The position numbers and the translations under genes were made by a program. Shown here one piece after another: positions 26,173 to 44,963 of a DNA stretch of 64,000 bases. Numbering within the stretch: position 1 is the first letter of the stretch; the number at the start of each line of letters is the position of its first letter. Under the pieces are notes generated by a model, which made no database searches, was not told the origin of the DNA, and worked only from the letters and a program-made list of their open reading frames with translations. Source of the DNA: Phaeosaccion multiseriatum. Taxonomy: Eukaryota > Protista > Ochrophyta, other classes. The stretch is from NCBI GenBank assembly GCA_965112735.1, contig CBCOSG010000001.1, positions 62,001 through 126,000 of the forward strand, in the 5' to 3' direction.

Positions 26173-26244
26173 TGGGTAGATTACAATACTAGAAAAGTAG
26201 AATAATCCTAAGTAAATTATCTTGTGTTCTACGCTATTAAGCTA

Positions 26245-26515
26245 TAGAATTATAAGTGAGTCTACTGCGCGAAGCTTAGGCAGTGGAGGTAGTTTGATTT
26301 GTGAAGTTTTTTAAATCTAAGATTCACGTAGTTTTTTCATATACTGGTGGACTAAAGCACTTGGCCAGCTTGTTAGGCTCATGATCTAAAAGTCGTAGGT
26401 ATAAGTTCTACCTTTGCCCGCAATATCCTGTTTCCTGACTTTCTGGGATTTAAGATGAAGACCAAAAAATATATATTAAATTAGCTACACCCCACTCCAC
26501 TTCTCTTGTGAGGGA
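26245..26515 (+). pseudogene. duplicated rps8 3' end + pseudo-trnM + rps10 5' end (inverted copy of ~850-1118)
   Basis: GAATTATAAGTGAGTCTACTGCGCGAAGCTTAGGCAGTGGAGGTAGTTTGATTTGTGAAG identical to rps8; AAATTAGCTACACCCCA is the rps10 start with the ATG lost. Confidence 0.92.
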
Positions 26516-26608
26516 AAAAATAAGGAAAAAAGAAGCAAACAGTAATTTATAGAACCTAGATTTGTTTCAGAGGAGCAAATACGGACTTCGTGATATTTAG
26601 GAAGAACC

Positions 26609-26761
26609 ATGCCACAATTTGATCAAATCACCTTTTTTACTCAAATTCTTAATTTGGGTTTGTGTTTTTTTGGATTTTATTTTTTCTTTGTTTTCTACTA
26701 CCTGCCCAGTCTTAGTGCCTCTTTAAAATTACGCAAGATTTTTAAGGATCTTCCCCGTTAA
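26609..26761 (+). CDS. atp8: ATP synthase subunit 8 (50 aa)
   Basis: MPQFDQITFFTQ...LPSLSASLKLRK; below the ORF-track cutoff. Confidence 0.95.
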   Translation: MPQFDQITFFTQILNLGLCFFGFYFFFVFYYLPSLSASLKLRKIFKDLPR

Positions 26762-26784
26762 GTATCTGATGTTCGAAGCCCAGT

Positions 26785-26858
26785 CGGGAAATGGCGCAGC
26801 TTGGTAGCGCATCTGTTTTGGGAACAGAAGGTCATGTGTTCAAATCACATTTTCCCGA
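26785..26858 (+). tRNA. trnP: tRNA-Pro(UGG)
   Basis: TT-TGG-GA. Confidence 0.94.
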
Positions 26859-26957
26859 ATACTTAGGTATTTGCCTACGAACTTCAGGAGCCTAATAGAA
26901 AACCTCAAGGTATCTCTTGCATCACATATTTTGGTAATTTTAGTGAATGCGATGGGA

Positions 26958-27028
26958 GACCGGATAGCATAAGGGCAATGCCTTGGATTGCAAATCCAAT
27001 TATGGGAATTCGACTTTCCCTCCGGTCT
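26958..27028 (+). tRNA. trnC: tRNA-Cys(GCA)
   Basis: TT-GCA-AA; acceptor GACCGGA/TCCGGTC. Confidence 0.9.
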
Positions 27029-27050
27029 AATACTTGTAAAAAAGTAGAAA

Positions 27051-27145
27051 CCAAGATCGTACTGATATTTGTATGAAATTATACCATAGGTATTTATAAC
27101 CTAATATGGAAGCCATTCGTCTGAATCAGGTAGGGGTAAAAAACC
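27051..27145 (+). pseudogene. duplicated nad9 leader and 5' fragment
   Basis: CCAAGATCGTACTGATATTTGTATGAAATT matches 33215-33309; a CAA codon has become TAA. Confidence 0.9.
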
Positions 27146-27211
27146 TTGGGAAAGTAAGCAAAAAGAGAAAGAATACCTCCCAAGTCAAAATAGAGAAAAT
27201 TTATACTTCCT

Positions 27212-28108
27212 ATGACCACTAAAAAAATATTTATCAACCATCAGCTTGTTTTTGTTGAAGAATTTTCCTCAGTATTACAAGCATGTAGTAGTTTAGGCAT
27301 AGAACTTCCTCGATTTTGTTATCATCCCTTATTAAATATCGCGGGAAATTGTCGTTCCTGTCTAGTAGAAGTTAGCCAAGGTCCAAAACCTCAGATGAGT
27401 TGTGCCTTCCCTATTTTAGGAGGCGGACGATTTTTTCTTCATAGTCCTTTGGTACGAAAAGCCCGAGAAACAGTTTTAGAGTTCAATCTAGTAAACCACC
27501 CTCTAGATTGCCCTATTTGTGACCAAGGAGGGGAATGCGATCTCCAAAATCAAAGCTTTCACTTCGGCAGTGACAAAACACGGTACGCTGAAGTAAAGCG
27601 TACGGTCAAAGAGACTTTTCTAGGTCTAGGTATAAAAAGTTTGATGACTCGTTGCATACATTGCACTCGCTGTGTGCGGTATTCTAAGGAATGGTTGGGA
27701 GACAGTAATTTGACTGCCAATGGCAGAGGCTCTCACATGATAGTCGAAGCTTACTCCTCAACTCCCTTAACCACTTTAGCCTCAGGCAACGTAATAGATC
27801 TATGCCCCGTAGGGGCAGGTCTAAAAAAGGTGGTTAAAATTCTTGGGGAGAGTTGGGATTTTGTCGTCCGCTTGTGGCGAGACCTTCCTTTGGTATTGGC
27901 TTATCTTTCACTTATAATCTTATACACCTGCATTGGACTCCTCGGAGTCCGCCATATGTATGTGTATCTTGGCTGGGTCTATGCTACTTTTTTAGTAGTG
28001 TGGGGACTGTCACTTTACAAACTATGGCGGTGGGAGCCGTATAAAATAATAGGACCATATTTGGTCCTTGTTTTGTACGTCACTTTTAAGATTTGGGTTT
28101 CCTCTTAG
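27212..28108 (+). CDS. nad11: NADH dehydrogenase subunit 11 N-terminal Fe-S half with a ~96-aa hydrophobic C-terminal extension
   Basis: PRFCYH, AGNCRSCLVE, NHPLDCPICDQGGECDLQ, RCIHCTRCVR, DLCPVGA. Confidence 0.95.
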   Translation: MTTKKIFINHQLVFVEEFSSVLQACSSLGIELPRFCYHPLLNIAGNCRSCLVEVSQGPKPQMSCAFPILGGGRFFLHSPLVRKARETVLEFNLVNHPLDCPICDQGGECDLQNQSFHFGSDKTRYAEVKRTVKETFLGLGIKSLMTRCIHCTRCVRYSKEWLGDSNLTANGRGSHMIVEAYSSTPLTTLASGNVIDLCPVGAGLKKVVKILGESWDFVVRLWRDLPLVLAYLSLIILYTCIGLLGVRHMYVYLGWVYATFLVVWGLSLYKLWRWEPYKIIGPYLVLVLYVTFKIWVSS

Positions 28109-28159
28109 GAGCTGACAAGATTTTTCTTCCATTTGTGAAGTTTGTGACAAGCTTCAAGC

Positions 28160-29854
28160 AAAATAAAGAAAATCTTCACAAAGGGCATGGAGGGAATGCC
28201 TAGGGGCCCAGCCTCTGTAGACGTAGACAACAACGAAAGCTCGGAGGAAGGTCTTCGACCTGTGCACTTCGACCTTCTACCTTGGAAAACCATTCCGTTT
28301 GAGGAAAAACAGGCCAGTAAAGCCTGCAAAGAAGAGGGCAGACAAACTGAAACATCTAAGTAATCTGCTTAAGAGAAATCAACCGAGATACCGTAAGTAG
28401 CGGTGAGCGAAAACGGTGTAGGCTCTCTCCTAGACGACCTTGAAAGATCCAAATTAAAAAACGACTCCAGCTCAATAAAACATTGGATGGAGAAGAAAAC
28501 CATAGAAGGTACAAGTCCCGTAGGGGAAGAAAAGGAGAGGATTCAAGTACTTTTCTGGCGATAGACAAGGAATATTGGGGAGCCATCCTCAAAGCCTAAA
28601 TAGACTGGGCCACCCATAGTGAACAAGTATCGTGAGAGAAAGGTGAAACAGAGATTTCTGCTGTGAAATGTCCTGAAACTCCCTGCCTTTTAGGTGTTGA
28701 AGCTTTGTGGAAGTGACAGCCTACCTTTTGTATAATGGGTCAGTGAGTAAAAGATTAGGGGCAAGCTTAAGTTTAGGAAGGCAAAGGTCAATCGAGGAGT
28801 AAAACTTCGTGGAGTCCCAATTTTTTTTACCCGAAACCGACTGAGCTAAGATTGAACAGGTTGAAAAAGACAAGGCAACTTTCTTTGGAGGACCGAACCC
28901 GTGTATGTGGCAAAATACTGGGATGATTTGATCTTAGGGGTGAAAGGCCAATCAAAGTCGGAGATAGCTGGTTTTCTGCGAAATCTATTGAAGTAGAGCG
29001 TCTTAATGGGAAATCCGGGGTAGAGCACTGTCGTAGGAAAGGGGAGGCAAAATCTTACTGACTTATGGCAAACTGCGAATACAGGATACGTCTTCAATCA
29101 AGGCAGACAGACCATGGGTGCGAAGGTCCTTGGTCAAAAGGGAAACAGCCCAGATTGATGGTTAAGGTCCCCAAAGGAAAGGAAGTGAAGAAGGAGGTGA
29201 CGAGCTAAAGACAGCCAGGAGGTAGGCTTGGTAGCAGTCATCCTTTAAAGAATGCGTAACAGCTCACTGGTCGAAGTTTTTTGCGCCCACAATGTTTGGG
29301 ACTAATCTTTCCTACCGAAGCCTCAAACCCTACAGGGTGGTAGCAGAACCTTCCGTAGGTCGAGGAAGATGAGGGGCAACCTTCATTGGAGATATCGGAA
29401 TCGAGAATACTGACATGAGTAGCAACAAACCAGGAGGATCCTGGTGGCCTTAAATTCAAGGGTTTCCACGACAGATTTCTTCTTCGTGGGGGCTTGAGCT
29501 AATCTCAAGCCATAAAGACGGTCCCTAAGACTGCTGACGAAAGCCAGGGTTGATGGGAGATCTTAGACAGGACGAAGCTGGCAGAGGAAGTAGAGGAGTA
29601 TAGCTGGTCTCCTCTGCTTTAGCTCAGCTTCCAGGAAATACTTCTAGGAGCGGCACCGTATCGTAAACCGACACAGGTGAATGGGTGGAGTACACTCAGG
29701 CCTTTTACACTCAGAGCCTTTTGAGAACCGTGTTGAAGGAACTCGGCAAAATGACTCCGTGGCTTCGGTAGAAGGAGGAAGCCTTTGTAGGCTTGGCACT
29801 AAAGTGGGAGCGGCGACTGTTTAGTAAAAACACAGGACTCTGCGAAGTTGTAAA

Positions 29855-29892
<38 letters not shown>

Positions 29893-29978
29893 CGGAAGAC
29901 CCGAAAGTGGAAGCTTTTAGGGAGAATGCCCAGTAAACGGCGGCTGTAACTCTGACGGTCCTAAGGTAGCAAAACTGA

Positions 29979-30009
<31 letters not shown>

Positions 30010-30085
30010 TGTAACGACTGCTCCGCTGTCTCCAACACGGACTCAGTGAAATTCCCATGGTCGTGAAGAGGCGACCTCGCTGCAG

Positions 30086-30119
<34 letters not shown>

Positions 30120-30424
30120 TTTGAGCTGGGAAGCATGACATAGGTTGCGTAGTAGTAGGTGGGAGGTTATGCCGCAGATGAAAGACCACCCTCCTTCAGT
30201 CTAGCTTTCTTCACCTGACTTGGGACAGGCTCAGACGGGTAGTTTGGCTGGGACGGCAGCCTCCTAAAGAGTAACGGGGGTACGCAAAGGTACACCCTTC
30301 CATGAAGGAAGAAAAGGCGGAATGGCTTGATGTGTGCCTGACTGTAAGACTCACAAGTCGAACAGAGACGAAAGTCGGCCATACAGATCCGGTGGATGTG
30401 CATATGGGCACTTCACCGCTCATA

Positions 30425-30460
<36 letters not shown>

Positions 30461-30862
30461 TCTCGAGAGCTCCTATCGACGGAAGGGTTTGGCACCTCGA
30501 TGTCGACTCATCACATCCTGGAGGAGAAAAAGCTTCCAAGGGTTGGGCTGTTCGCCCATGAAAGTGGTACGTGAGTTGGGTTTAGAACGTCGTGAGACAG
30601 TTTGGTCCCTATCTACTGTGGACAACAATCTAAGGGAAGAAATTCTAGTACGAGAGGACCGAATTTCGGGGATCCATGGTGTACCGGTTGTGTGAGCACA
30701 TGCAGTGTCGGGTAGCTACATCTCTAGAAGAGAATGGCTGAAAGCATCTAAGCCAGAAACTTGTCCTCAAGCATTGTCTAGGCCTCGTTTTAGACGAAAA
30801 CGTGAATAGGAGGGTAGTGAAAGTCGTGTAAGCGGTGTAGCTGATCCTTACTAATTAGGCTT
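28160..30862 (+). rRNA. rnl: mitochondrial LSU rRNA; no introns seen
   Basis: ACTGAAACATCTAAGTA, GACGGAAAGACCCC, GGCACCTCGATGTCG, AGTACGAGAGGAC (sarcin-ricin loop); ends approximate. Confidence 0.98.
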
Positions 30863-31729
30863 ATGATGTTTAAATACATGCTGCGTCGTATGTGGAAACG
30901 AATAACAGATTTGGATACAGAGGTTTGGTTTGTAATACTGTTTGTAGCCTACTTTTTAACCTTTGTCATTTCCTCCCTTGGACTGTTTGAGGGTAGGTTT
31001 GATATCGTGTGTTCACTAGTGCAATTCAGCGTCCATCTGGGGTGGATTTTTTACTACCATAAAGAGGTAATTTTACCCAAGTTTAGAAAGGATAAAACCC
31101 GGTGTAGAGAGGGCAGTTATGTCGCATCTCTTTACCAGGATAGTCTGGGACACGAAGGTTTGGCAAAAGTACAAACTCTCTTGTATTCGTCATTTATCCT
31201 CGGAATCGGTCTACCACCAAAATACTCTATTTTGTTTTATCTCATAGGTTTACTCTCCTTATTGGCCTGTCTCTATTTACTGCCGGCGTATGTGCGATCA
31301 ACCACACGACTGTTTCAGGAGTGTTTTTTGAATCCTGGAGTACTCCACGCTAAAGGGTTTACAAAAAAAAGAATAGTGTGGGAAGTGGCTGTAGAACACG
31401 GCAAAAGAATTCAAATAATTGTAGCGGGGGGCTAGTGGCAGATGTGTGGGTCGGAAAGTTCTTTTACGGTCTAGATGGAAGGTCGTCGCTGCAAAATTTC
31501 TATTCTTCGACGTTCGATAACTTCACTGCGGACACTCAAGAGAGTGTCACGAAATTCCGGGCCCCGGGCCCTCGAAAGCAGGAGAGTCCCCTCAGACCTG
31601 ATGAAGACGGCGTCGGGGAAACTGGATATAGGAGCAATAGATTGGCTTCTTCAAGAGTATAACGCGGCTCTTGATCATTACGGAGAACTATATAAGGCTC
31701 AACTTGAAGATCGAGTCGAAAAACCTTAA
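30863..31729 (+). CDS. ~orf287, membrane ORFan and paralog of orf280; frameshifted as assembled (G6 run at ~31426; 7-nt duplication at ~31561)
   Basis: Collinear with orf280: KTRcrEGsYVaSLYqDSL, FqECFLnPgVL, GFTKKRiVWE, ...LEDrVEKP. Confidence 0.75.
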
Positions 31730-31806
31730 TAGTGTAGAGATAGGTAAGTTGCTAAAGGGGTATAATACCCCTAAGTAAATTATTTTGTCTTCTATGCTAT
31801 TAAGCT

Positions 31807-31880
31807 ATGGAATTATAAGTGAGTCTACTGCGCGAAGCTTAGGCAGTGGAGGTAGTTTGATTGGTAAAGTTTTTTAGACC
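31807..31880 (+). pseudogene. second duplicated rps8 3' fragment
   Basis: TATGGAATTATAAGTGAGTCTACTGCGCGAAGCTTAGGCAGTGGAGGTAGTTTGATT identical to the rps8 3' end. Confidence 0.92.
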
Positions 31881-31908
31881 TAGGACTCACATAGTCTTTT
31901 CATACCAT

Positions 31909-31982
31909 GGTGGAGTAGAGCAGTTGGCCAGCTTGTTAGGCTCATGATCTAAAAGTCGTAGGTTCGAATCCTACCTCCGCCC
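31909..31982 (+). tRNA. trnM: tRNA-Met(CAU), initiator-like, intact copy
   Basis: Full cloverleaf GGTGGAG/CTCCGCC with GTAGG-TTCGAAT-CCTAC. Confidence 0.88.
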
Positions 31983-32217
31983 GTATGCATGAACGAATAA
32001 ATCCCCAGTCTAACGAGGAAATCCTCGGTTTAAAGTCTTACATCTGCTACATTAGTCCCAGGTCCGGATCTGGGCCATCTACCTATATTCCCATTATAGC
32101 CAATATTGGCCATATAGGCCGATACTAGCTAAAATAAAGAGGATAGATAAATGGGTTTCTCTTGCAAGCTTCCGCCGAAGATACCTCTTTCGAGGAAGGG
32201 GTTAGAAGGCGGAAAAG

Positions 32218-32250
32218 GGTGATGCCAACCCCCAAGGAAGCCGTGGCATT
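32218..32250. promoter_or_regulatory. motif GGTGATGCC-N14-CCGTGGCATT, copy 2; function unknown
   Basis: Matches 21281-21313. Confidence 0.6.
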
Positions 32251-32318
32251 CAGTAAGCAACCTTGGCATTTAAGCATCAGTCTGATCCATTGGTGCTTAG
32301 AAAGGTTCCTGGATTTGT

Positions 32319-32747
32319 ATGGATAGGCCGTCAGATTTCTGTCCCGGCGGTGGTAAGTTCAAATCTTACCAAATCCAAATTTGCGGCTTACATCAGCTTG
32401 TTCGTTATCCCCGTATACCTCAGTCCTCTCGTAGCAAATCTCCCGCTTTAAAGTCTTGCCCTCAAAAAAAGGGCCTTTGTTTAAAAATTTACTTACGAAA
32501 ACCCAAAAAGCCTAACTCTGCCCTACGAAAGTTATGCCGAGTACGCCTAAGTACAGGCCGTCGAATCAGCGCCTACATTCCTGGCGAGGGCCACAACCTT
32601 CAGGAATTTAATTCTGTTTTGATTCGAGGAGGTCGAGCTAAAGATCTTCCTGGTGTCCGTTACCACGTCATTCGGGGCAAGTATGACTGTTTGGGTTTAA
32701 TAAAGCGTACCACTTCTCGGTCCAAATATGGGGCCAGAAAACCATAA
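32319..32747 (+). CDS. rps12: ribosomal protein S12 (start uncertain)
   Basis: [30 protein letters not shown]. Confidence 0.98.
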
Positions 32748-32750
32748 AAA

Positions 32751-33184
32751 ATGAGATTGAGCCAAAGTTCTGAAGGAAGTATTTTTTGTAAGCATCTCAT
32801 TCGCCGCGGGGGTCGACTTCGAGCTCACAGCCTCGTAGGTAGCAGTCTGCGCTACCTCTACGAGCATCAACCGAAAAAGGCGGCTTATGTGTTTTTTCAT
32901 GCTCTTCAACAGACTGAACCTATGGCTCAGGGAAAAACTTTTCCTGGCCGAAGAAAAAGCAAGCCAAAGTACGATGGATTTCTTTCCCTCTCTGGAAAAA
33001 ACGTCGTCAATACCTTAGTCTCCACTGGATTCTTCGTACGACTCCGAAGGGTCCACTATCTAAAAATCTAGGTTCTTCCTTGTGTAAAGCCAGTCAGTCG
33101 ACTGGCGAAGCCACTTTTCTAAAGCAGGCTTATCATCAACAAAGTTTAGAAGGTCGGCCTTATGCCAACTATCGCTGGCACTAA
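32751..33184 (+). CDS. rps7: ribosomal protein S7 (1-nt A-run frameshift in this arm; intact in the mirror copy)
   Basis: Follows rps12; mirror ORF 36722-37156 ends RPYANYRW. Confidence 0.88.
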
Positions 33185-33236
33185 AAACTGAATCGGCTTT
33201 TGTGTATTAGAGGGCCAAGATCGTACTGATATTTGT

Positions 33237-33764
33237 ATGAAATTGTACCATAGGTATTTACAACCTAATATGGAAATTATTCCTCTGAGCCAGGTGCGGG
33301 TAAAAAACCAGGAGGTGTGCGCTTATCTGCCTTTTCCTCCTCAGTGTTTTTCAACTTTGGTTTATCTAAAGTATCATACAAACACTGGGTATAAAATTTT
33401 ATCTTGTATCTCCGGAGTGGATTACCCTTGCCGACAAAGTCGGTTGGAAGTGGTCTACGAAGTATTAAGTATCAAGTATAACCAACGCCTCCGTTTGCGA
33501 ACTCTGTTTCAACCTAAAACCTTTAGATTTTTAGGTCTAGATTCAGTAACTAATATTTATATGGGCGCCAATTGGTGGGAAAGAGAAGTTTGGGATATGT
33601 TTGGTATCCTTTTTGAAAATCACCCCAGTTTACGGCGAATCTTAACGGATTACGGCTTTCAAGGCCATCCTTTACGAAAAGATTTCCCATTGACAGGCTA
33701 CGAAGAACTTAGGTACGACGATAGTGTGAAGAGAGTGGTAGGTAATCTTATCCAAAATTTATAG
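33237..33764 (+). CDS. nad9: NADH dehydrogenase subunit 9
   Basis: GVDYP, WWEREVWDMFG, RRILTDYGFQGHPLRKDFPLTGY. Confidence 0.98.
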   Translation: MKLYHRYLQPNMEIIPLSQVRVKNQEVCAYLPFPPQCFSTLVYLKYHTNTGYKILSCISGVDYPCRQSRLEVVYEVLSIKYNQRLRLRTLFQPKTFRFLGLDSVTNIYMGANWWEREVWDMFGILFENHPSLRRILTDYGFQGHPLRKDFPLTGYEELRYDDSVKRVVGNLIQNL

Positions 33765-33831
33765 AGGGAAAATATATTGGTTGTTGTGGACATTAGTGGG
33801 CCTGTATCATAAAGTTAAGCCAAACTTTGGT

Positions 33832-33902
33832 TGGAGTATAGCCAAGTGGAAAGGCAGCCGTTTTTGGCGCGGCCATCCAAGGTTCAAATCCTTGTACTCC
33901 AT
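33832..33902 (+). tRNA. trnQ: tRNA-Gln(UUG)
   Basis: TT-TTG-GC. Confidence 0.92.
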
Positions 33903-33914
33903 AAAAGAATGCAC

Positions 33915-33986
33915 AATTGAATACTATAGAGTCAATGCCTTGGATTGCAAATTCTATCAGGAGGATTTTATTTGGTTTCCAGCCTA
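33915..33986 (+). pseudogene. trnC: degenerate tRNA-Cys
   Basis: CAATGCCTTGGATTGCAAAT shared with the trnC at 26958; other arms lost. Confidence 0.75.
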
Positions 33987-34000
33987 GTTAGTAGATAAAT

Positions 34001-34072
34001 GCAGAAGTAACTCAAAGGTAGAGTGCAAGCTTGCCAAGTTTGAAGCTGAGGGTTCAAATCCCTTCTTTTGCT
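34001..34072 (+). tRNA. trnG: tRNA-Gly(GCC)
   Basis: TT-GCC-AA. Confidence 0.92.
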
Positions 34073-34145
34073 GGGTCCATAGCTCAGTTGGAAGAGCATT
34101 GGCCTTCTAAGCCAAACGTCATAGGTTCGAGTCCTATTGGACCCT
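34073..34145 (+). tRNA. trnR: tRNA-Arg(UCU)
   Basis: CT-TCT-AA. Confidence 0.94.
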
Positions 34146-34375
34146 GATCAGCCACTCCCGGAGGTTTGTCTTCATCATAGGCTGACAAGCCTTTTCTAAA
34201 TAGGGAAAACTAACTCCAATAAAATTAGTTGGATTATTTTCCTCCTTGATCTCAGTATTTCTAATTATCATTCTACTTATGTGTACAGGGGCTCAAATTT
34301 ATATTCTTCTTATAGAGTTGAAGATTGAAGAGATATTTTTAGAAAGACCCAGCTGAATGTATTGTATCAAATCTT

Positions 34376-34891
34376 ATGCGCAAAAGACGACTTTATATAT
34401 CCGACAAAGTTTGTTGTGTTATTGAAAACCAAATTTTACGAATCGAAGGACCTTTGGGGGAAAAATCCTTAGTTCTTCCTCGTGGTTTAGGCCTCCGTTG
34501 GAGTCAAGGCCGTTTAGATTATCTACCAAATTGGCGACTGCGAAAACTAGAAGCTAGTTTCTACGACGTTTTAAAAAAAACCATCCAAGGAGTGCATCAA
34601 GGTTTTGTCTTACATTTAGATATTTTAGGTGTGGGATATAAAGCGGAGGTCCAAGATAAGGATTTACGCCTAAAATTGGGCAAAAGCAAAATAGATGTCA
34701 TGGATTTAGGCTATGGTATTGATGTTAAATGCCTAAAACCTCGACATATGTTTTTGCAAGCCGCAGAAGGAAATTTTCTCCGTCAAACTGCTGCTAATAT
34801 CCGTAGTCTTCACCCTCCGGAAGTTTATAAGCAAAAGGGCATTTTTTATCGAGGAGAAAAATCTGTGACCAAACAAGGGAAAGTAAATTAA
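34376..34891 (+). CDS. rpl6: ribosomal protein L6
   Basis: EGPLG, LDILGVGYKA, PPEVYKQKGI. Confidence 0.96.
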   Translation: MRKRRLYISDKVCCVIENQILRIEGPLGEKSLVLPRGLGLRWSQGRLDYLPNWRLRKLEASFYDVLKKTIQGVHQGFVLHLDILGVGYKAEVQDKDLRLKLGKSKIDVMDLGYGIDVKCLKPRHMFLQAAEGNFLRQTAANIRSLHPPEVYKQKGIFYRGEKSVTKQGKVN

Positions 34892-34935
34892 AGAATTACG
34901 CCTCTACATATGCTAAAGAAAAAAGATAGGGGGTC

Positions 34936-34970
34936 TAGCTCTTTTAGTAGTACCGTCTTTACTAATCCTT
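34936..34970. other. 35-nt non-palindromic apex; candidate hairpin telomere loop
   Basis: TAGCTCTTTTAGTAGTACCGTCTTTACTAATCCTT between GATAGGGGGTC and GACCCCCTATC; inner stem TTAGTA/TACTAA. Confidence 0.7.
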
Positions 34971-35014
34971 GACCCCCTATCTTTTTTCTTTAGCATATGT
35001 AGAGGCGTAATTCT

Positions 35015-35530
35015 TTAATTTACTTTCCCTTGTTTGGTCACAGATTTTTCTCCTCGATAAAAAATGCCCTTTTGCTTATAAACTTCCGGAGGGTGAAGAC
35101 TACGGATATTAGCAGCAGTTTGACGGAGAAAATTTCCTTCTGCGGCTTGCAAAAACATATGTCGAGGTTTTAGGCATTTAACATCAATACCATAGCCTAA
35201 ATCCATGACATCTATTTTGCTTTTGCCCAATTTTAGGCGTAAATCCTTATCTTGGACCTCCGCTTTATATCCCACACCTAAAATATCTAAATGTAAGACA
35301 AAACCTTGATGCACTCCTTGGATGGTTTTTTTTAAAACGTCGTAGAAACTAGCTTCTAGTTTTCGCAGTCGCCAATTTGGTAGATAATCTAAACGGCCTT
35401 GACTCCAACGGAGGCCTAAACCACGAGGAAGAACTAAGGATTTTTCCCCCAAAGGTCCTTCGATTCGTAAAATTTGGTTTTCAATAACACAACAAACTTT
35501 GTCGGATATATAAAGTCGTCTTTTGCGCAT
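35015..35530 (-). CDS. rpl6: rpl6, mirror copy
   Basis: Identical protein to 34376-34891. Confidence 0.95.
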   Translation of the reverse strand: MRKRRLYISDKVCCVIENQILRIEGPLGEKSLVLPRGLGLRWSQGRLDYLPNWRLRKLEASFYDVLKKTIQGVHQGFVLHLDILGVGYKAEVQDKDLRLKLGKSKIDVMDLGYGIDVKCLKPRHMFLQAAEGNFLRQTAANIRSLHPPEVYKQKGIFYRGEKSVTKQGKVN

Positions 35531-35760
35531 AAGATTTGATACAATACATTCAGCTGGGTCTTTCTAAAAATATCTCTTCAATCTTCAACTCTATAAGAAG
35601 AATATAAATTTGAGCCCCTGTACACATAAGTAGAATGATAATTAGAAATACTGAGATCAAGGAGGAAAATAATCCAACTAATTTTATTGGAGTTAGTTTT
35701 CCCTATTTAGAAAAGGCTTGTCAGCCTATGATGAAGACAAACCTCCGGGAGTGGCTGATC

Positions 35761-35833
35761 AGGGTCCAATAGGACTCGAACCTATGACGTTTGGCTTAGA
35801 AGGCCAATGCTCTTCCAACTGAGCTATGGACCC
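35761..35833 (-). tRNA. trnR: tRNA-Arg(UCU), mirror copy
   Basis: Reverse complement of 34073-34145. Confidence 0.92.
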
Positions 35834-35905
35834 AGCAAAAGAAGGGATTTGAACCCTCAGCTTCAAACTTGGCAAGCTTGCACTCTACCTTTGAGTTACT
35901 TCTGC
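35834..35905 (-). tRNA. trnG: tRNA-Gly(GCC), mirror copy
   Basis: Reverse complement of 34001-34072. Confidence 0.9.
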
Positions 35906-36003
35906 ATTTATCTACTAACTAGGCTGGAAACCAAATAAAATCCTCCTGATAGAATTTGCAATCCAAGGCATTGACTCTATAGTATTCAATTGTGCATTCT
36001 TTT

Positions 36004-36074
36004 ATGGAGTACAAGGATTTGAACCTTGGATGGCCGCGCCAAAAACGGCTGCCTTTCCACTTGGCTATACTCCA
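36004..36074 (-). tRNA. trnQ: tRNA-Gln(UUG), mirror copy
   Basis: Reverse complement of 33832-33902. Confidence 0.9.
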
Positions 36075-36141
36075 ACCAAAGTTTGGCTTAACTTTATGAT
36101 ACAGGCCCACTAATGTCCACAACAACCAATATATTTTCCCT

Positions 36142-36669
36142 CTATAAATTTTGGATAAGATTACCTACCACTCTCTTCACACTATCGTCGTACCTAAGTT
36201 CTTCGTAGCCTGTCAATGGGAAATCTTTTCGTAAAGGATGGCCTTGAAAGCCGTAATCCGTTAAGATTCGCCGTAAACTGGGGTGATTTTCAAAAAGGAT
36301 ACCAAACATATCCCAAACTTCTCTTTCCCACCAATTGGCGCCCATATAAATATTAGTTACTGAATCTAGACCTAAAAATCTAAAGGTTTTAGGTTGAAAC
36401 AGAGTTCGCAAACGGAGGCGTTGGTTATACTTGATACTTAATACTTCGTAGACCACTTCCAACCGACTTTGTCGGCAAGGGTAATCCACTCCGGAGATAC
36501 AAGATAAAATTTTATACCCAGTGTTTGTATGATACTTTAGATAAACCAAAGTTGAAAAACACTGAGGAGGAAAAGGCAGATAAGCGCACACCTCCTGGTT
36601 TTTTACCCGCACCTGGCTCAGAGGAATAATTTCCATATTAGGTTGTAAATACCTATGGTACAATTTCAT
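36142..36669 (-). CDS. nad9: nad9, mirror copy
   Basis: Identical protein. Confidence 0.96.
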   Translation of the reverse strand: MKLYHRYLQPNMEIIPLSQVRVKNQEVCAYLPFPPQCFSTLVYLKYHTNTGYKILSCISGVDYPCRQSRLEVVYEVLSIKYNQRLRLRTLFQPKTFRFLGLDSVTNIYMGANWWEREVWDMFGILFENHPSLRRILTDYGFQGHPLRKDFPLTGYEELRYDDSVKRVVGNLIQNL

Positions 36670-36721
36670 ACAAATATCAGTACGATCTTGGCCCTCTAAT
36701 ACACAAAAGCCGATTCAGTTT

Positions 36722-37156
36722 TTAGTGCCAGCGATAGTTGGCATAAGGCCGACCTTCTAAACTTTGTTGATGATAAGCCTGCTTTAGAAAAGTGGCTTCG
36801 CCAGTCGACTGACTGGCTTTACACAAGGAAGAACCTAGATTTTTAGATAGTGGACCCTTCGGAGTCGTACGAAGAATCCAGTGGAGACTAAGGTATTGAC
36901 GACGTTTTTTCCAGAGAGGGAAAGAAATCCATCGTACTTTGGCTTGCTTTTTTCTTCGGCCAGGAAAAGTTTTTCCCTGAGCCATAGGTTCAGTCTGTTG
37001 AAGAGCATGAAAAAACACATAAGCCGCCTTTTTCGGTTGATGCTCGTAGAGGTAGCGCAGACTGCTACCTACGAGGCTGTGAGCTCGAAGTCGACCCCCG
37101 CGGCGAATGAGATGCTTACAAAAAATACTTCCTTCAGAACTTTGGCTCAATCTCAT
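36722..37156 (-). CDS. rps7: ribosomal protein S7, intact
   Basis: 144 aa; position after rps12; uS7-like C-terminus. Confidence 0.9.
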   Translation of the reverse strand: MRLSQSSEGSIFCKHLIRRGGRLRAHSLVGSSLRYLYEHQPKKAAYVFFHALQQTEPMAQGKTFPGRRKKQAKVRWISFPLWKKRRQYLSLHWILRTTPKGPLSKNLGSSLCKASQSTGEATFLKQAYHQQSLEGRPYANYRWH

Positions 37157-37159
37157 TTT

Positions 37160-37588
37160 TTATGGTTTTCTGGCCCCATATTTGGACCGAGAAGTGGTAC
37201 GCTTTATTAAACCCAAACAGTCATACTTGCCCCGAATGACGTGGTAACGGACACCAGGAAGATCTTTAGCTCGACCTCCTCGAATCAAAACAGAATTAAA
37301 TTCCTGAAGGTTGTGGCCCTCGCCAGGAATGTAGGCGCTGATTCGACGGCCTGTACTTAGGCGTACTCGGCATAACTTTCGTAGGGCAGAGTTAGGCTTT
37401 TTGGGTTTTCGTAAGTAAATTTTTAAACAAAGGCCCTTTTTTTGAGGGCAAGACTTTAAAGCGGGAGATTTGCTACGAGAGGACTGAGGTATACGGGGAT
37501 AACGAACAAGCTGATGTAAGCCGCAAATTTGGATTTGGTAAGATTTGAACTTACCACCGCCGGGACAGAAATCTGACGGCCTATCCAT
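37160..37588 (-). CDS. rps12: rps12, mirror copy
   Basis: Identical protein. Confidence 0.96.
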
Positions 37589-37924
37589 ACAAATCCAGGA
37601 ACCTTTCTAAGCACCAATGGATCAGACTGATGCTTAAATGCCAAGGTTGCTTACTGAATGCCACGGCTTCCTTGGGGGTTGGCATCACCCTTTTCCGCCT
37701 TCTAACCCCTTCCTCGAAAGAGGTATCTTCGGCGGAAGCTTGCAAGAGAAACCCATTTATCTATCCTCTTTATTTTAGCTAGTATCGGCCTATATGGCCA
37801 ATATTGGCTATAATGGGAATATAGGTAGATGGCCCAGATCCGGACCTGGGACTAATGTAGCAGATGTAAGACTTTAAACCGAGGATTTCCTCGTTAGACT
37901 GGGGATTTATTCGTTCATGCATAC

Positions 37925-37998
37925 GGGCGGAGGTAGGATTCGAACCTACGACTTTTAGATCATGAGCCTAACAAGCTGGCCAACTGCTCTACTCCACC
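37925..37998 (-). tRNA. trnM: tRNA-Met(CAU), mirror copy
   Basis: Reverse complement of 31909-31982. Confidence 0.86.
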
Positions 37999-38177
37999 AT
38001 GGTATGAAAAGACTATGTGAGTCCTAGGTCTAAAAAACTTTACCAATCAAACTACCTCCACTGCCTAAGCTTCGCGCAGTAGACTCACTTATAATTCCAT
38101 AGCTTAATAGCATAGAAGACAAAATAATTTACTTAGGGGTATTATACCCCTTTAGCAACTTACCTATCTCTACACTA

Positions 38178-39037
38178 TTAAGGTTTTTCGACTCGATCTT
38201 CAAGTTGAGCCTTATATAGTTCTCCGTAATGATCAAGAGCCGCGTTATACTCTTGAAGAAGCCAATCTATTGCTCCTATATCCAGTTTCCCCGACGCCGT
38301 CTTCATCAGGTCTGAGGGGACTCTCCTGCTTTCGAGGGCCCGGAATTTCGTGACACTCTCTTGAGTGTCCGCAGTGAAGTTATCGAACGTCGAAGAATAG
38401 AAATTTTGCAGCGACGACCTTCCATCTAGACCGTAAAAGAACTTTCCGACCCACACATCTGCCACTAGCCCCCCGCTACAATTATTTGAATTCTTTTGCC
38501 GTGTTCTACAGCCACTTCCCACACTATTCTTTTTTTTGTAAACCCTTTAGCGTGGAGTACTCCAGGATTCAAAAAACACTCCTGAAACAGTCGTGTGGTT
38601 GATCGCACATACGCCGGCAGTAAATAGAGACAGGCCAATAAGGAGAGTAAACCTATGAGATAAAACAAAATAGAGTATTTTGGTGGTAGACCGATTCCGA
38701 GGATAAATGACGAATACAAGAGAGTTTGTACTTTTGCCAAACCTTCGTGTCCCAGACTATCCTGGTAAAGAGATGCGACATAACTGCCCTCTCTACACCG
38801 GGTTTTATCCTTTCTAAACTTGGGTAAAATTACCTCTTTATGGTAGTAAAAAATCCACCCCAGATGGACGCTGAATTGCACTAGTGAACACACGATATCA
38901 AACCTACCCTCAAACAGTCCAAGGGAGGAAATGACAAAGGTTAAAAAGTAGGCTACAAACAGTATTACAAACCAAACCTCTGTATCCAAATCTGTTATTC
39001 GTTTCCACATACGACGCAGCATGTATTTAAACATCAT
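38178..39037 (-). CDS. ~orf287, mirror copy (only the G6 frameshift)
   Basis: The 190-aa and 114-aa ORFs join at IVAGG/LVADV. Confidence 0.75.
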
Positions 39038-39439
39038 AAGCCTAATTAGTAAGGATCAGCTACACCGCTTACACGACTTTCACTACCCTCCTATTCACGT
39101 TTTCGTCTAAAACGAGGCCTAGACAATGCTTGAGGACAAGTTTCTGGCTTAGATGCTTTCAGCCATTCTCTTCTAGAGATGTAGCTACCCGACACTGCAT
39201 GTGCTCACACAACCGGTACACCATGGATCCCCGAAATTCGGTCCTCTCGTACTAGAATTTCTTCCCTTAGATTGTTGTCCACAGTAGATAGGGACCAAAC
39301 TGTCTCACGACGTTCTAAACCCAACTCACGTACCACTTTCATGGGCGAACAGCCCAACCCTTGGAAGCTTTTTCTCCTCCAGGATGTGATGAGTCGACAT
39401 CGAGGTGCCAAACCCTTCCGTCGATAGGAGCTCTCGAGA

Positions 39440-39475
<36 letters not shown>

Positions 39476-39780
39476 TATGAGCGGTGAAGTGCCCATATGC
39501 ACATCCACCGGATCTGTATGGCCGACTTTCGTCTCTGTTCGACTTGTGAGTCTTACAGTCAGGCACACATCAAGCCATTCCGCCTTTTCTTCCTTCATGG
39601 AAGGGTGTACCTTTGCGTACCCCCGTTACTCTTTAGGAGGCTGCCGTCCCAGCCAAACTACCCGTCTGAGCCTGTCCCAAGTCAGGTGAAGAAAGCTAGA
39701 CTGAAGGAGGGTGGTCTTTCATCTGCGGCATAACCTCCCACCTACTACTACGCAACCTATGTCATGCTTCCCAGCTCAAA

Positions 39781-39814
<34 letters not shown>

Positions 39815-39890
39815 CTGCAGCGAGGTCGCCTCTTCACGACCATGGGAATTTCACTGAGTCCGTGTTGGAGACAGCGGAGCAGTCGTTACA

Positions 39891-39921
<31 letters not shown>

Positions 39922-40007
39922 TCAGTTTTGCTACCTTAGGACCGTCAGAGTTACAGCCGCCGTTTACTGGGCATTCTCCCTAAAAGCTTCCACTTTCGGG
40001 TCTTCCG

Positions 40008-40045
<38 letters not shown>

Positions 40046-41724
40046 TTTACAACTTCGCAGAGTCCTGTGTTTTTACTAAACAGTCGCCGCTCCCACTTTA
40101 GTGCCAAGCCTACAAAGGCTTCCTCCTTCTACCGAAGCCACGGAGTCATTTTGCCGAGTTCCTTCAACACGGTTCTCTCAAAAGGCCTGAGTGTACTCCA
40201 CCCATTCACCTGTGTCGGTTTACGATACGGTGCCGCTCCTAGAAGTATTTCCTGGAAGCTGAGCTAAAGCAGAGGAGACCAGCTATACTCCTCTACTTCC
40301 TCTGCCAGCTTCGTCCTGTCTAAGATCTCCCATCAACCCTGGCTTTCGTCAGCAGTCTTAGGGACCGTCTTTATGGCTTGAGATTAGCTCAAGCCCCCAC
40401 GAAGAAGAAATCTGTCGTGGAAACCCTTGAATTTAAGGCCACCAGGATCCTCCTGGTTTGTTGCTACTCATGTCAGTATTCTCGATTCCGATATCTCCAA
40501 TGAAGGTTGCCCCTCATCTTCCTCGACCTACGGAAGGTTCTGCTACCACCCTGTAGGGTTTGAGGCTTCGGTAGGAAAGATTAGTCCCAAACATTGTGGG
40601 CGCAAAAAACTTCGACCAGTGAGCTGTTACGCATTCTTTAAAGGATGACTGCTACCAAGCCTACCTCCTGGCTGTCTTTAGCTCGTCACCTCCTTCTTCA
40701 CTTCCTTTCCTTTGGGGACCTTAACCATCAATCTGGGCTGTTTCCCTTTTGACCAAGGACCTTCGCACCCATGGTCTGTCTGCCTTGATTGAAGACGTAT
40801 CCTGTATTCGCAGTTTGCCATAAGTCAGTAAGATTTTGCCTCCCCTTTCCTACGACAGTGCTCTACCCCGGATTTCCCATTAAGACGCTCTACTTCAATA
40901 GATTTCGCAGAAAACCAGCTATCTCCGACTTTGATTGGCCTTTCACCCCTAAGATCAAATCATCCCAGTATTTTGCCACATACACGGGTTCGGTCCTCCA
41001 AAGAAAGTTGCCTTGTCTTTTTCAACCTGTTCAATCTTAGCTCAGTCGGTTTCGGGTAAAAAAATTGGGACTCCACGAAGTTTTACTCCTCGATTGACCT
41101 TTGCCTTCCTAAACTTAAGCTTGCCCCTAATCTTTTACTCACTGACCCATTATACAAAAGGTAGGCTGTCACTTCCACAAAGCTTCAACACCTAAAAGGC
41201 AGGGAGTTTCAGGACATTTCACAGCAGAAATCTCTGTTTCACCTTTCTCTCACGATACTTGTTCACTATGGGTGGCCCAGTCTATTTAGGCTTTGAGGAT
41301 GGCTCCCCAATATTCCTTGTCTATCGCCAGAAAAGTACTTGAATCCTCTCCTTTTCTTCCCTACGGGACTTGTACCTTCTATGGTTTTCTTCTCCATCCA
41401 ATGTTTTATTGAGCTGGAGTCGTTTTTTAATTTGGATCTTTCAAGGTCGTCTAGGAGAGAGCCTACACCGTTTTCGCTCACCGCTACTTACGGTATCTCG
41501 GTTGATTTCTCTTAAGCAGATTACTTAGATGTTTCAGTTTGTCTGCCCTCTTCTTTGCAGGCTTTACTGGCCTGTTTTTCCTCAAACGGAATGGTTTTCC
41601 AAGGTAGAAGGTCGAAGTGCACAGGTCGAAGACCTTCCTCCGAGCTTTCGTTGTTGTCTACGTCTACAGAGGCTGGGCCCCTAGGCATTCCCTCCATGCC
41701 CTTTGTGAAGATTTTCTTTATTTT
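39038..41724 (-). rRNA. rnl: LSU rRNA, mirror copy
   Basis: Reverse complement of 28160-30862. Confidence 0.96.
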
Positions 41725-41775
41725 GCTTGAAGCTTGTCACAAACTTCACAAATGGAAGAAAAATCTTGTCAGCTC

Positions 41776-42672
41776 CTAAGAGGAAACCCAAATCTTAAAA
41801 GTGACGTACAAAACAAGGACCAAATATGGTCCTATTATTTTATACGGCTCCCACCGCCATAGTTTGTAAAGTGACAGTCCCCACACTACTAAAAAAGTAG
41901 CATAGACCCAGCCAAGATACACATACATATGGCGGACTCCGAGGAGTCCAATGCAGGTGTATAAGATTATAAGTGAAAGATAAGCCAATACCAAAGGAAG
42001 GTCTCGCCACAAGCGGACGACAAAATCCCAACTCTCCCCAAGAATTTTAACCACCTTTTTTAGACCTGCCCCTACGGGGCATAGATCTATTACGTTGCCT
42101 GAGGCTAAAGTGGTTAAGGGAGTTGAGGAGTAAGCTTCGACTATCATGTGAGAGCCTCTGCCATTGGCAGTCAAATTACTGTCTCCCAACCATTCCTTAG
42201 AATACCGCACACAGCGAGTGCAATGTATGCAACGAGTCATCAAACTTTTTATACCTAGACCTAGAAAAGTCTCTTTGACCGTACGCTTTACTTCAGCGTA
42301 CCGTGTTTTGTCACTGCCGAAGTGAAAGCTTTGATTTTGGAGATCGCATTCCCCTCCTTGGTCACAAATAGGGCAATCTAGAGGGTGGTTTACTAGATTG
42401 AACTCTAAAACTGTTTCTCGGGCTTTTCGTACCAAAGGACTATGAAGAAAAAATCGTCCGCCTCCTAAAATAGGGAAGGCACAACTCATCTGAGGTTTTG
42501 GACCTTGGCTAACTTCTACTAGACAGGAACGACAATTTCCCGCGATATTTAATAAGGGATGATAACAAAATCGAGGAAGTTCTATGCCTAAACTACTACA
42601 TGCTTGTAATACTGAGGAAAATTCTTCAACAAAAACAAGCTGATGGTTGATAAATATTTTTTTAGTGGTCAT
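41776..42672 (-). CDS. nad11: nad11 Fe-S half with tail, mirror copy
   Basis: Identical protein. Confidence 0.93.
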   Translation of the reverse strand: MTTKKIFINHQLVFVEEFSSVLQACSSLGIELPRFCYHPLLNIAGNCRSCLVEVSQGPKPQMSCAFPILGGGRFFLHSPLVRKARETVLEFNLVNHPLDCPICDQGGECDLQNQSFHFGSDKTRYAEVKRTVKETFLGLGIKSLMTRCIHCTRCVRYSKEWLGDSNLTANGRGSHMIVEAYSSTPLTTLASGNVIDLCPVGAGLKKVVKILGESWDFVVRLWRDLPLVLAYLSLIILYTCIGLLGVRHMYVYLGWVYATFLVVWGLSLYKLWRWEPYKIIGPYLVLVLYVTFKIWVSS

Positions 42673-42855
42673 AGGAAGTATAAATTTTCTCTATTTTGAC
42701 TTGGGAGGTATTCTTTCTCTTTTTGCTTACTTTCCCAAGGTTTTTTACCCCTACCTGATTCAGACGAATGGCTTCCATATTAGGTTATAAATACCTATGG
42801 TATAATTTCATACAAATATCAGTACGATCTTGGTTTCTACTTTTTTACAAGTATT

Positions 42856-42926
42856 AGACCGGAGGGAAAGTCGAATTCCCATAATTGGATTTGCAATCCA
42901 AGGCATTGCCCTTATGCTATCCGGTC
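42856..42926 (-). tRNA. trnC: tRNA-Cys(GCA), mirror copy
   Basis: Reverse complement of 26958-27028. Confidence 0.88.
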
Positions 42927-43025
42927 TCCCATCGCATTCACTAAAATTACCAAAATATGTGATGCAAGAGATACCTTGAGGTTTTCTATTAGGCTCCTGA
43001 AGTTCGTAGGCAAATACCTAAGTAT

Positions 43026-43099
43026 TCGGGAAAATGTGATTTGAACACATGACCTTCTGTTCCCAAAACAGATGCGCTACCAAGCTGCGCCATTTCCCG
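43026..43099 (-). tRNA. trnP: tRNA-Pro(UGG), mirror copy
   Basis: Reverse complement of 26785-26858. Confidence 0.92.
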
Positions 43100-43122
43100 A
43101 CTGGGCTTCGAACATCAGATAC

Positions 43123-43275
43123 TTAACGGGGAAGATCCTTAAAAATCTTGCGTAATTTTAAAGAGGCACTAAGACTGGGCAGGTAGTAGAAAACAAAGAA
43201 AAAATAAAATCCAAAAAAACACAAACCCAAATTAAGAATTTGAGTAAAAAAGGTGATTTGATCAAATTGTGGCAT
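43123..43275 (-). CDS. atp8: atp8, mirror copy
   Basis: Reverse complement of 26609-26761. Confidence 0.92.
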   Translation of the reverse strand: MPQFDQITFFTQILNLGLCFFGFYFFFVFYYLPSLSASLKLRKIFKDLPR

Positions 43276-43711
43276 GGTTCTTCCTAAATATCACGAAGTC
43301 CGTATTTGCTCCTCTGAAACAAATCTAGGTTCTATAAATTACTGTTTGCTTCTTTTTTCCTTATTTTTTCCCTCACAAGAGAAGTGGAGTGGGGTGTAGC
43401 TAATTTAATATATATTTTTTGGTCTTCATCTTAAATCCCAGAAAGTCAGGAAACAGGATATTGCGGGCAAAGGTAGAACTTATACCTACGACTTTTAGAT
43501 CATGAGCCTAACAAGCTGGCCAAGTGCTTTAGTCCACCAGTATATGAAAAAACTACGTGAATCTTAGATTTAAAAAACTTCACAAATCAAACTACCTCCA
43601 CTGCCTAAGCTTCGCGCAGTAGACTCACTTATAATTCTATAGCTTAATAGCGTAGAACACAAGATAATTTACTTAGGATTATTCTACTTTTCTAGTATTG
43701 TAATCTACCCA

Positions 43712-44553
43712 TTAAGGTTTTTCGATTGTATCCTCTAGTTGGGCTCTATACTCTTCTCCTACATAATCAAGAACGGTATTATAGTCCTGAAGGAACCAAT
43801 TTACTGCCCCTACATCTACTTTCCCGGACGCCGTCTTCAATAGCTCTGAGGGGACTCCTCTTCTCTCGAGGAATCGGAATTTTGTGACACTTTCGTGAGT
43901 GTCCGCAGTGAAGTTAGCAAACGTCGAAGAAAATAAGTTTTGCATCGACGACCTCCCGTCTGGGCCATAAAGGTACTTTCCGATCCCCACGTCGACAAGT
44001 AGGCCCCCTATAATGAAAATTCCGGCCCTCTTTAAGTGTTCCACAGTTAGCTCCCACACTAACCTCTTTTTCGTGAACCCTCTCTCATAGAGTACACGGG
44101 GGTCCAAAAAACATTCATTAAAAGCCGCCGCGTTGCCCGCAGATATCCTGGCAAGAAGTAAATGGACATTAATACGAAAATTACACCTACAAAGTAGGCC
44201 ATATTTGAATACTGCCGCGGCAGAAGAATCCCCAATACAAAAGACCAATACAGATATGTCTGAAGTTTGCCAAAGATTGGATGGGTAAGACTGTCCGCGT
44301 AAAGAGAGACTACATAAAGGCCCTCTTTAGACCGAGTTTTGGCATTTTCAAATTTTAGTATCATCGACCATTTTTGATATTGAAACACCCAAACCACACA
44401 AAGACTCGCTTTAAAAATGAACGAGGCCGAATTTGGGTACATATACGGTAGCGGCAGTAAAAGAGTTTGAATTCCTAAAGTCAAAATGAAAGCAGGGCTT
44501 AAAATTTTAAACCAAGATTTTGCAGGAGAATTGACTAAAAACTGCAAGTACAA
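43712..44553 (-). CDS. orf280, mirror copy (T-run frameshift)
   Basis: The 164-aa and 178-aa pieces reproduce orf280. Confidence 0.75.
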
Positions 44554-44797
44554 GTAGAGAGCTCATTAGTTTAATTTTTTATCAAATTAAAGAAGTTCAT
44601 TAGTACACAAAACCAAAAAAAAATAAGCATACTCACCAAGAGCTTCAAAATCTCAGTGATGCTGATGCCTAAAAAATACCAAAACCCTATATTGTGTTTT
44701 AAGACTGACATAGGTTCCAGAAGCTTATGTTTCACCTTTATAAAGAAAACTTTCATTCTTAAATTCTATACCGCCTGAGGTTCAAGACCTTATTTCT

Positions 44798-44963
44798 TTG
44801 AATTCAGCCGCAGATTCCTCTACGACTACCTTGTTACGACTTCATCTCAGTTACCAAGCCTACTTTCAAATCCAAGAGAATAGACAAAGCATTTCATTGA
44901 CATTCTTCGAGCAAGCCCGGCTTCCAACATGTGACGGGCGGTTTGTACAGAGCCTAGGTACAG

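Follow-up and report, generated by a model that had tools for sequence, protein, structure and literature searches.

A 31-kb near-perfect palindrome with a 35-nt centre in an ochrophyte mitochondrial genome, probably circular-mapping or concatemeric with orientation isomers

The stretch of DNA analyzed here (64,000 nucleotides, hereafter the window; C17:62001–126000 of the 224,089-bp contig C17, in an assembly of 67 Mb and 22 contigs) is mirrored over tens of kilobases around a single point, which raises the question of whether a linear mitochondrial chromosome is closed by a hairpin at this site, whether two inverted repeats of a circular-mapping genome meet there, or whether the mirror was created on the way from molecule to assembly. 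The first-pass annotation of the sequence had preferred the first of these possibilities, a genome folding back on itself at a chromosome end, and had named, among its alternatives, a circular genome whose very large inverted repeat leaves a single-copy region of only 35 nt. It is this alternative that we now find to fit the data best. The layout of the whole contig, the gene content and public short reads all bear on the question and are considered below.

At the level of individual bases, the turn-around is where it had been placed. The left arm closes with ...GATAGGGGGTC at 34935 and the right arm opens with GACCCCCTATC at 34971; the symmetry point is thus window position 34953, with an exact mirror up to 34935 and again from 34971. 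Complementarity was complete (900/900) in a single register, defined by paired coordinates that sum to 69906, compared with about 25–33% in neighbouring registers. Between the arms, at the centre of the palindrome, lies a 35-nt spacer (34936–34970; TAGCTCTTTTAGTAGTACCGTCTTTACTAATCCTT), delimited from the window letters and the junction sequences as well as by an exact 95-nt short-read unitig, which takes the role of a ‘small single-copy region’. With an edit distance of 19 to its own reverse complement the spacer is asymmetric and non-palindromic, yet it can fold, both as previously described: for the segment 34916–34990, treated as single-stranded DNA, a structure of −21.3 kcal/mol (z = −7.8) is predicted that combines a 20-bp perfect stem with a partly paired 35-nt tip, the latter including a helix of TTAGTA (34944–34949) and TACTAA (34960–34965) over a 10-nt loop. 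According to this prediction, the core of the palindrome would be able to extrude as a hairpin or cruciform. The exact spacer sequence found no match in the JGI metagenomes and does not resemble the common ONT and PacBio adapter sequences.

Away from the centre, BLAST aligned positions 5901–34935 to 64000–34971; the 29,061 columns of the alignment contain 0 mismatches and 34 gap openings, 30 of them length differences of 1–4 bases in base runs or short repeats and the remaining four 7-base gaps; this arm-to-arm gap pattern is that of long-read consensus errors. In the window the mirror stops only at the window edge, and in the full contig it extends for ~71 kb in each direction (C17 25477–168330). 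The 29 kb or more that had been described as mirrored around 34953 do not represent the arm of one repeat; on each side, the mirror combines an inverted repeat of 15.5 kb with a unique region, one copy of which is flipped. This became evident from the contig as a whole, which is made up of exactly four copies of a ~55.9-kb mitochondrial unit. Self-comparison and junction sequences gave the order within the unit as unique region U (24.9 kb), repeat R (15.5 kb), 35-nt spacer and repeat R' (15.5 kb). The 536 bp to the left of the spacer recur as four plus-strand copies, each followed by a minus-strand copy, at a spacing of ~55.9 kb, and the blocks of R, spacer and R' occupy C17 25477–56496, 81425–112472, 137407–168330 and 193271–224089, with the same base-exact turn-around in all four. 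Every unit has the same R'|U and U|R junctions, both ends of U adjoin the outer end of the repeat, and the two single-copy regions (U with 24.9 kb and the spacer with 35 nt) separate the repeats such that each repeat joins both. As the last base of the contig (224089) runs on into its first base in unit coordinates, C17 represents an exact four-unit circular permutation. The unique regions follow each other as x, x, x', x. Around the first centre, flanks of the unmirrored type x...x are found and the self-palindrome (C17 25477–56496) ends at 15.5 kb, which identifies window positions 19425–34935 and 34971–50472 as the true arms; mirrored flanks reaching ~71 kb are found at two of the three internal centres, and the mirror in the window exceeds the 15.5-kb repeat because the next copy of the unique region, U3, is flipped.

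Accordingly delimited, the window starts with the right-hand 19.4 kb of the unique region copy U2 (1–19424, plus strand; based on self-comparison and gene matches), the whole of which spans C17 56497–81424 (24.9 kb). It is followed by arm R with 15,511 nt (19425–34935, plus strand; based on whole-contig self-comparison and junction sequences), the spacer, and arm R' with 15,502 nt (34971–50472, minus strand), mirroring R according to BLAST, self-comparison and junction sequences. The beginning of U3 (50473–64000, minus strand), inverted relative to U1, U2 and U4 as judged from the R'|U3 versus R'|U2 junctions, completes the window. In both BLAST and contig self-comparison, R and R' were 15.4–15.5 kb long, inverted, and different by indels only. 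We also considered a second symmetry centre, which would place a hairpin at the far end of a genome of ~28 kb, and rejected it: the midpoint between the centres falls into the nad4 gene of U (window ~6970), and U does not form a palindrome with itself. Consensus quality declines toward the right end of C17, unit 4 being 98.2–99.4% identical to the others, whereas units 1 and 2 share 99.9–100% identity. Unit 1 alone carries a 124-nt insertion in U (C17:7575–7698), consisting in part of new sequence and in part of an imperfect duplication of its flank and absent in the other three units; it represents either a heteroplasmic variant or a consensus error.

The spacer itself occurs in both orientations. 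The copy in the window, here termed flip, is followed by its exact reverse complement, flop, at C17 152808–152842, and the four copies along the contig read flip, flip, flop, flop, in agreement with the expectation of the first-pass annotation that both isoforms may appear. Reverse-complementing copy 2 gives copy 3 exactly. Copy 1 resembles flip and copy 4 resembles flop, each with 7 edits, an error density far higher than the roughly 1 indel per kb found elsewhere and one that points to reads of mixed orientation or to low base-calling quality at the turn. It should be noted that the orientation of the spacer has a meaning only relative to U, because R-flip-R' read on the opposite strand is R-flop-R'.

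The genes identify the type of replicon. Rfam and ARAGORN detected 34 tRNA genes, SSU and LSU rRNAs of bacterial type and a 5S rRNA of the permuted mitochondrial type. Mitochondrial ORFs encode cox1, cox3, cob, atp6, nad5, nad6, nad7, nad9, nad11 and ribosomal proteins; another ORF encodes a further NADH dehydrogenase subunit, which we call nad4 from its match to Proton_antipo_M. The cox1 protein is 79–80% identical to its counterparts in Schizocladia and brown algae and 83% identical to a metagenome protein, which makes the host an ochrophyte alga without a close sequenced relative. Judged from these rRNA, tRNA, gene and cox1 matches, the replicon is the mitochondrial genome of an ochrophyte (stramenopile) alga, in accord with the earlier reading as the mtDNA of a diatom-like alga. 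The repeats carry both rRNA genes, rrn5, 9 tRNAs, nad9, nad11, rps12, rpl14 and rpl6. Arm R comprises orf176, rpl14, an ORF, trnR, trnY, rrn5, rns, orf280, trnP, trnC, nad11, rnl, orf190, trnM, rps12, an ORF, nad9, trnQ, trnG, trnR and rpl6, with all genes transcribed toward the spacer. The last gene ahead of the centre, rpl6 (34376–34891, plus strand; gene match), ends 44 nt short of the spacer and has its mirror copy, likewise identified by a gene match, at 35015–35530 on the minus strand. The part of U2 in the window harbours rps10, rps8, nad6, atp6, nad5, a tRNA cluster, nad4, cox1, cox3, nad7, rps3 and cob, and transcription in U diverges from a point near window 7700. The outer boundary of R (window 19425, C17 81425) lies inside cob (18348–19520, plus strand; ORF and gene matches, junctions), 96 nt before the end of the gene; beside the opposite end of the unique region, the other repeat copy bears a 32-codon cob tail.

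The left copies of cob, rps3 and nad4 are intact (18348–19520, 15439–16560 and 6228–7682, respectively), whereas the right copies are split into fragments (50377–51552, 53739–54461 and 62296–63673), owing to homopolymer indels in the right-hand copy. The split right-hand genes are assembly errors and not pseudogenes. Several further features of the sequence deserve mention. The Rfam matches to mtPerm-5S, the permuted mitochondrial 5S rRNA (23374–23485 and 46397–46508), are located directly upstream of rns in each repeat copy and score 40.4 bits versus a threshold of 39 bits. Behind rns and rnl, the inverted repeat contains a pair of ~520-nt direct repeats with 81% identity (25876–26400 versus 31426–31963), and a 281-nt segment of U (838–1118) is 90% identical, in inverted orientation, to a piece of the repeat (26243–26523). 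Elsewhere in the assembly, rbcL was found with identical scores on C18:88102–89019 and C21:22185–23102; the plastid genome appears to be included twice, perhaps in the form of two isomers.

Support for the junction that is independent of the contig came from public short reads. Part of the stretch is contained in 12 public runs, and X9–X12, which derive from one sample, contain 97% of its words. We placed the unitigs or contigs of X9, X10, X1 and X2 on window positions 33500–36400. X9 and X10 are without a library record and probably stem from the same project as the assembly. Both contain a 1,182-nt unitig that breaks off precisely at 34935, where a palindrome boundary forces a de Bruijn graph to branch, and a 95-nt unitig that covers 34906–35000 (30 + 35 + 30 nt) with zero differences from the window. 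The depth of this spacer unitig was 58.8 and 108.2 in X9 and X10, that of the collapsed arms 170 and 263.2, corresponding to ratios of 0.35 and 0.41 where 0.5 is expected for one duplex junction per genome. The spacer is thus present at ~0.7–0.8 copy per genome, or 18–31% below expectation, a depth compatible with most genome copies carrying the junction in double-stranded form. The shortfall could be due to a bias of library preparation against palindromes, or to a fraction of genomes being broken or hairpin-resolved at the centre. Neighbouring arm unitigs were equally deep (172/170 and 272/263), and a nuclear locus with 47 nt of nad9 had depths of about 90 and 54; the flat arm depth together with the depth of this locus suggests that X9 and X10 are whole-genome DNA libraries. 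The nuclear locus is an insert of mitochondrial DNA (C4:4782288–4782380) in which a piece of 47 nt, identical to window 33737–33783 at the 3' end of nad9, is joined to ~47 nt with 91% identity to a piece of the unique region, and it was visible as a branch of nuclear-like depth in the short-read unitig graph. No third branch leading from 34935 into other sequence was present in the X9 and X10 unitigs, whereas reads passing this position into unique sequence had been named beforehand as an observation that would speak against a turn at this site. Run X1, from another study of the same organism, was too shallow (depth 2–6) and gave no contig over the centre, and X2 contributed tRNA-sized or diverged pieces only.

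These data allow us to weigh explanations in which the palindrome would be spurious or confined to particular intermediates. One might argue that a long read chimerized by fold-back, with the second strand read after the first or with a missed adapter, created a false palindrome from a genome with a single R; the arms indeed differ only by homopolymer indels typical of long-read error, reading frames are broken in the right arm, and the contig is a multi-unit concatemer. We nevertheless regard this explanation as highly improbable, because the short-read unitigs carry the exact spacer at near genome-level depth. The 95-nt spanning unitig recurs without differences in two short-read runs (depth 59 and 108), the junction returns at the same base four times in the contig, and the arm unitig stops exactly at 34935, as demanded by a true palindrome boundary. 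In its simple form, a fold-back is ruled out by the centre that has the same U orientation on both sides. The turn-around at a fixed asymmetric spacer, put forward in the first-pass annotation, is thus real and not a library chimera. In another scenario, the junction would exist mainly in head-to-head/tail-to-tail multimers arising by replication or recombination (inverted dimers, akin to the replication intermediates of Paramecium or poxviruses) instead of in monomeric circles. Such multimers would account for the mirrored x...x' flanks at two contig centres and for a duplex junction at near-stoichiometric depth. However, flip-flop recombination in ordinary concatemers yields mirrored units equally well, and U lacks a second symmetry centre and joins R at both ends, which is at odds with a Paramecium-type cycle with one hairpin. 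We therefore consider this scenario improbable.

More weight is due to the possibility that the main in vivo form is a linear ~56-kb chromosome of the structure R'-U-R, with 15.5-kb terminal inverted repeats and 35-nt covalent hairpin loops, and that the mirrored concatemer resulted from the assembler chaining long reads that passed through the loops. Linear mtDNA of this type 1 is known from Williopsis, Pichia and Candida viswanathii, and closed ends of the kind have been hypothesized for Proteromonas and Palpitomonas. The spacer has the size of a loop and is predicted to fold, flip and flop spacers are both represented in the contig, and two of the three internal centres are mirrored for ~71 kb. 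In addition, the genes of the repeat are all directed outward, toward the loop, and transcription diverges within U, as in the linear genome of Proteromonas (PMC2997541); the spacer unitig is under-represented by 18–31% and errors cluster at spacer copies 1 and 4; and palindromes of yeast mitochondria are resolved into t-hairpins (PMC3105423, PMC11100356). Against this stands the one centre whose flanks have the same orientation, which is impossible for a read through a hairpin although it could reflect a choice of the assembler, and the presence of the spacer at 0.7–0.8 copy per genome, since a loop in a snap-back insert would, as we infer, be expected rarely in standard short-insert libraries. 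Resolvases of the ResT/TelK and Ydc2/Cce1 types were not detected in the 67-Mb assembly, both being weak negatives: the search for the ResT/TelK family (PF16684; the kind of Borrelia ResT and phage N15 TelN) covered exons piecewise and its control matched one reference genome, and the control for the Ydc2/Cce1 family matched nowhere, making that search uninformative. Taken together, we judge a hairpin-capped linear chromosome unlikely to be the main form. A related notion takes the 35-nt centre for the place at which dimers of a linear chromosome, with hairpin caps and gene-rich terminal inverted repeats of 15.5 kb, are joined and resolved; this is possible, though less likely than not. A chromosome end at which the genome folds back, as originally put forward, is not supported, given that R' always runs on into the unique region, that the four-unit permutation is closed, that one centre is of the x...x type and that the spacer depth fits a duplex. 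The hairpin-telomere reading as a whole has partial support at best.

In our preferred interpretation, which we consider probably correct, the replicon is a circular-mapping or concatemeric ochrophyte mitogenome with a 31-kb palindrome and orientation isomers. Its ~55.9-kb unit consists of a 24.9-kb unique region and two identical gene-rich 15.5-kb inverted repeats that meet head to head across the 35-nt non-palindromic spacer, thereby forming the near-perfect palindrome. Recombination between the repeats (flip-flop, as known for plastid and oomycete inverted repeats) would generate both relative orientations of U and spacer; the assembler delivered a closed four-unit concatemer of this genome, in which the one flipped U copy among the four extends what looks like a single mirror in the window beyond 29 kb. 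The x...x centre, the short-read depth of the spacer and the recurrence of inverted-repeat layouts among mitogenomes favour a duplex junction. That the molecules are circular-mapping or concatemeric is what we infer from these features, and the mixed orientations would then stem from flip-flop recombination rather than from an arbitrary path choice of the assembler. The way in which the units are ordered and oriented in the contig may, for its part, go back to an arbitrary walk of the assembler instead of to existing molecules; the contig alone cannot settle the topology, because an assembler may take either U orientation after each repeat. A minority linear form produced by resolution of the palindrome, by analogy with some yeast mitochondria, would be plausible.

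The closest analogues are two yeast mitogenomes of the ‘large palindrome / type 1’ kind. That of Candida viswanathii has 4,162-bp repeats and a 798-bp spacer in a palindromic layout (PMC3105423), and that of Lodderomyces beijingensis (56.5 kb) combines repeats of 8,521 bp with a spacer of 335 bp, both orientations being represented among nanopore reads (PMC11100356). Physical mapping in these yeasts indicated circular-mapping forms beside a linear form presumed to be hairpin-ended (PMC3105423, PMC11100356); evidence for the linear hairpin-capped isomer came from nuclease tests and Southern blotting in C. viswanathii (PMC3105423) and from the restriction-fragment pattern in L. beijingensis (PMC11100356). 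Common to both yeasts and the present genome are adjoining, identical large inverted repeats that constitute a large palindrome in a mitogenome of ~40–56 kb, an intervening short region in both orientations, and a duplex palindrome in bulk DNA. The differences lie in the spacer (35 nt versus 798 and 335 bp), in the arms (15.5 kb versus 4.2 kb in C. viswanathii and 8.5 kb in L. beijingensis), in their content (rRNAs, tRNAs, nad and ribosomal-protein genes here, whereas the L. beijingensis palindrome is non-coding) and in the host, a photosynthetic stramenopile instead of a yeast. The linear mtDNAs of Williopsis/Pichia, as summarized in a later account, possess terminal inverted repeats with a single-stranded end loop (Dinouel et al. 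1993, cited in PMC3105423), and co-existing circular monomers and dimers are described there as carrying two repeats joined as a palindrome (PMC3105423). Compared with the closed loops described for these yeasts, our sequence data favour a duplex junction in most copies.

Among protists, Proteromonas lacertae, Palpitomonas bilix and Acavomonas have linear mitogenomes with large gene-rich terminal inverted repeats whose extreme ends were not sequenced, the linearity of P. bilix having been established by PFGE and Southern blots (PMC2997541, PMC5174734). The present genome resembles them in its succession of repeat, unique centre and repeat, in the rRNAs among the repeat genes and in outward transcription, and Proteromonas is a stramenopile as well. 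Unlike in these genomes, which were shown or argued to be linear, the repeats are joined here through a sequenced 35-nt spacer. In the quadripartite genomes of oomycetes, hyphochytrids, ancyromonads and plastids, the small single-copy region typically comprises hundreds to thousands of bases and carries genes, whereas it is reduced to 35 non-coding bases in our case. Otherwise these genomes, including those of the oomycetes Achlya, Pythium and Saprolegnia, share with it the location of rRNA genes in the inverted repeats (PMC6609731, PMC12086354) and a repeat boundary inside a gene; their two recombination isomers may have a counterpart here in the two orientations present within one contig. 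The circular mitogenomes of ancyromonads have inverted repeats of 7–29 kb (PMC12086354), and inverted-repeat mitogenomes in general are a known, recurrent layout (PMC6609731, PMC12086354). In the literature we found no description of an inverted-repeat mitogenome with a spacer as short as 35 nt, which is the size of a hairpin loop, nor of an ochrophyte-alga mitogenome with large inverted repeats or such an architecture. Likewise, 80 metagenome loci whose proteins are related to nad9 (≤59% identity across most of its length), none of them from a close relative, contained no large or terminal palindrome.

For users of the assembly, the immediate consequence concerns annotation, as the deposited contig repeats the mitochondrial genome four times, with one unit flipped and with frame-breaking homopolymer indels; the true genome size is ~56 kb rather than 224 kb. 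A 31-kb near-perfect palindrome with a 35-nt centre is also the most extreme palindromic inverted-repeat layout that we found described. Were the hairpin-capped linear reading to be true, photosynthetic stramenopiles would gain their first linear mtDNA of type 1 (t-hairpin) and the Proteromonas/Palpitomonas class its first terminal-loop sequence, and the 18–31% shortfall of the spacer in short reads would be a measure of the resolved fraction. In yeasts, the palindromic inverted-repeat layout is the mark of genomes that can alternate between a circular-mapping form and a linear one capped by hairpins. Should such a switch exist in the present case, the alga would offer a tractable non-fungal system for studying the origin of linear mitochondrial chromosomes, and a model for the unsequenced genome ends of Proteromonas and Palpitomonas.
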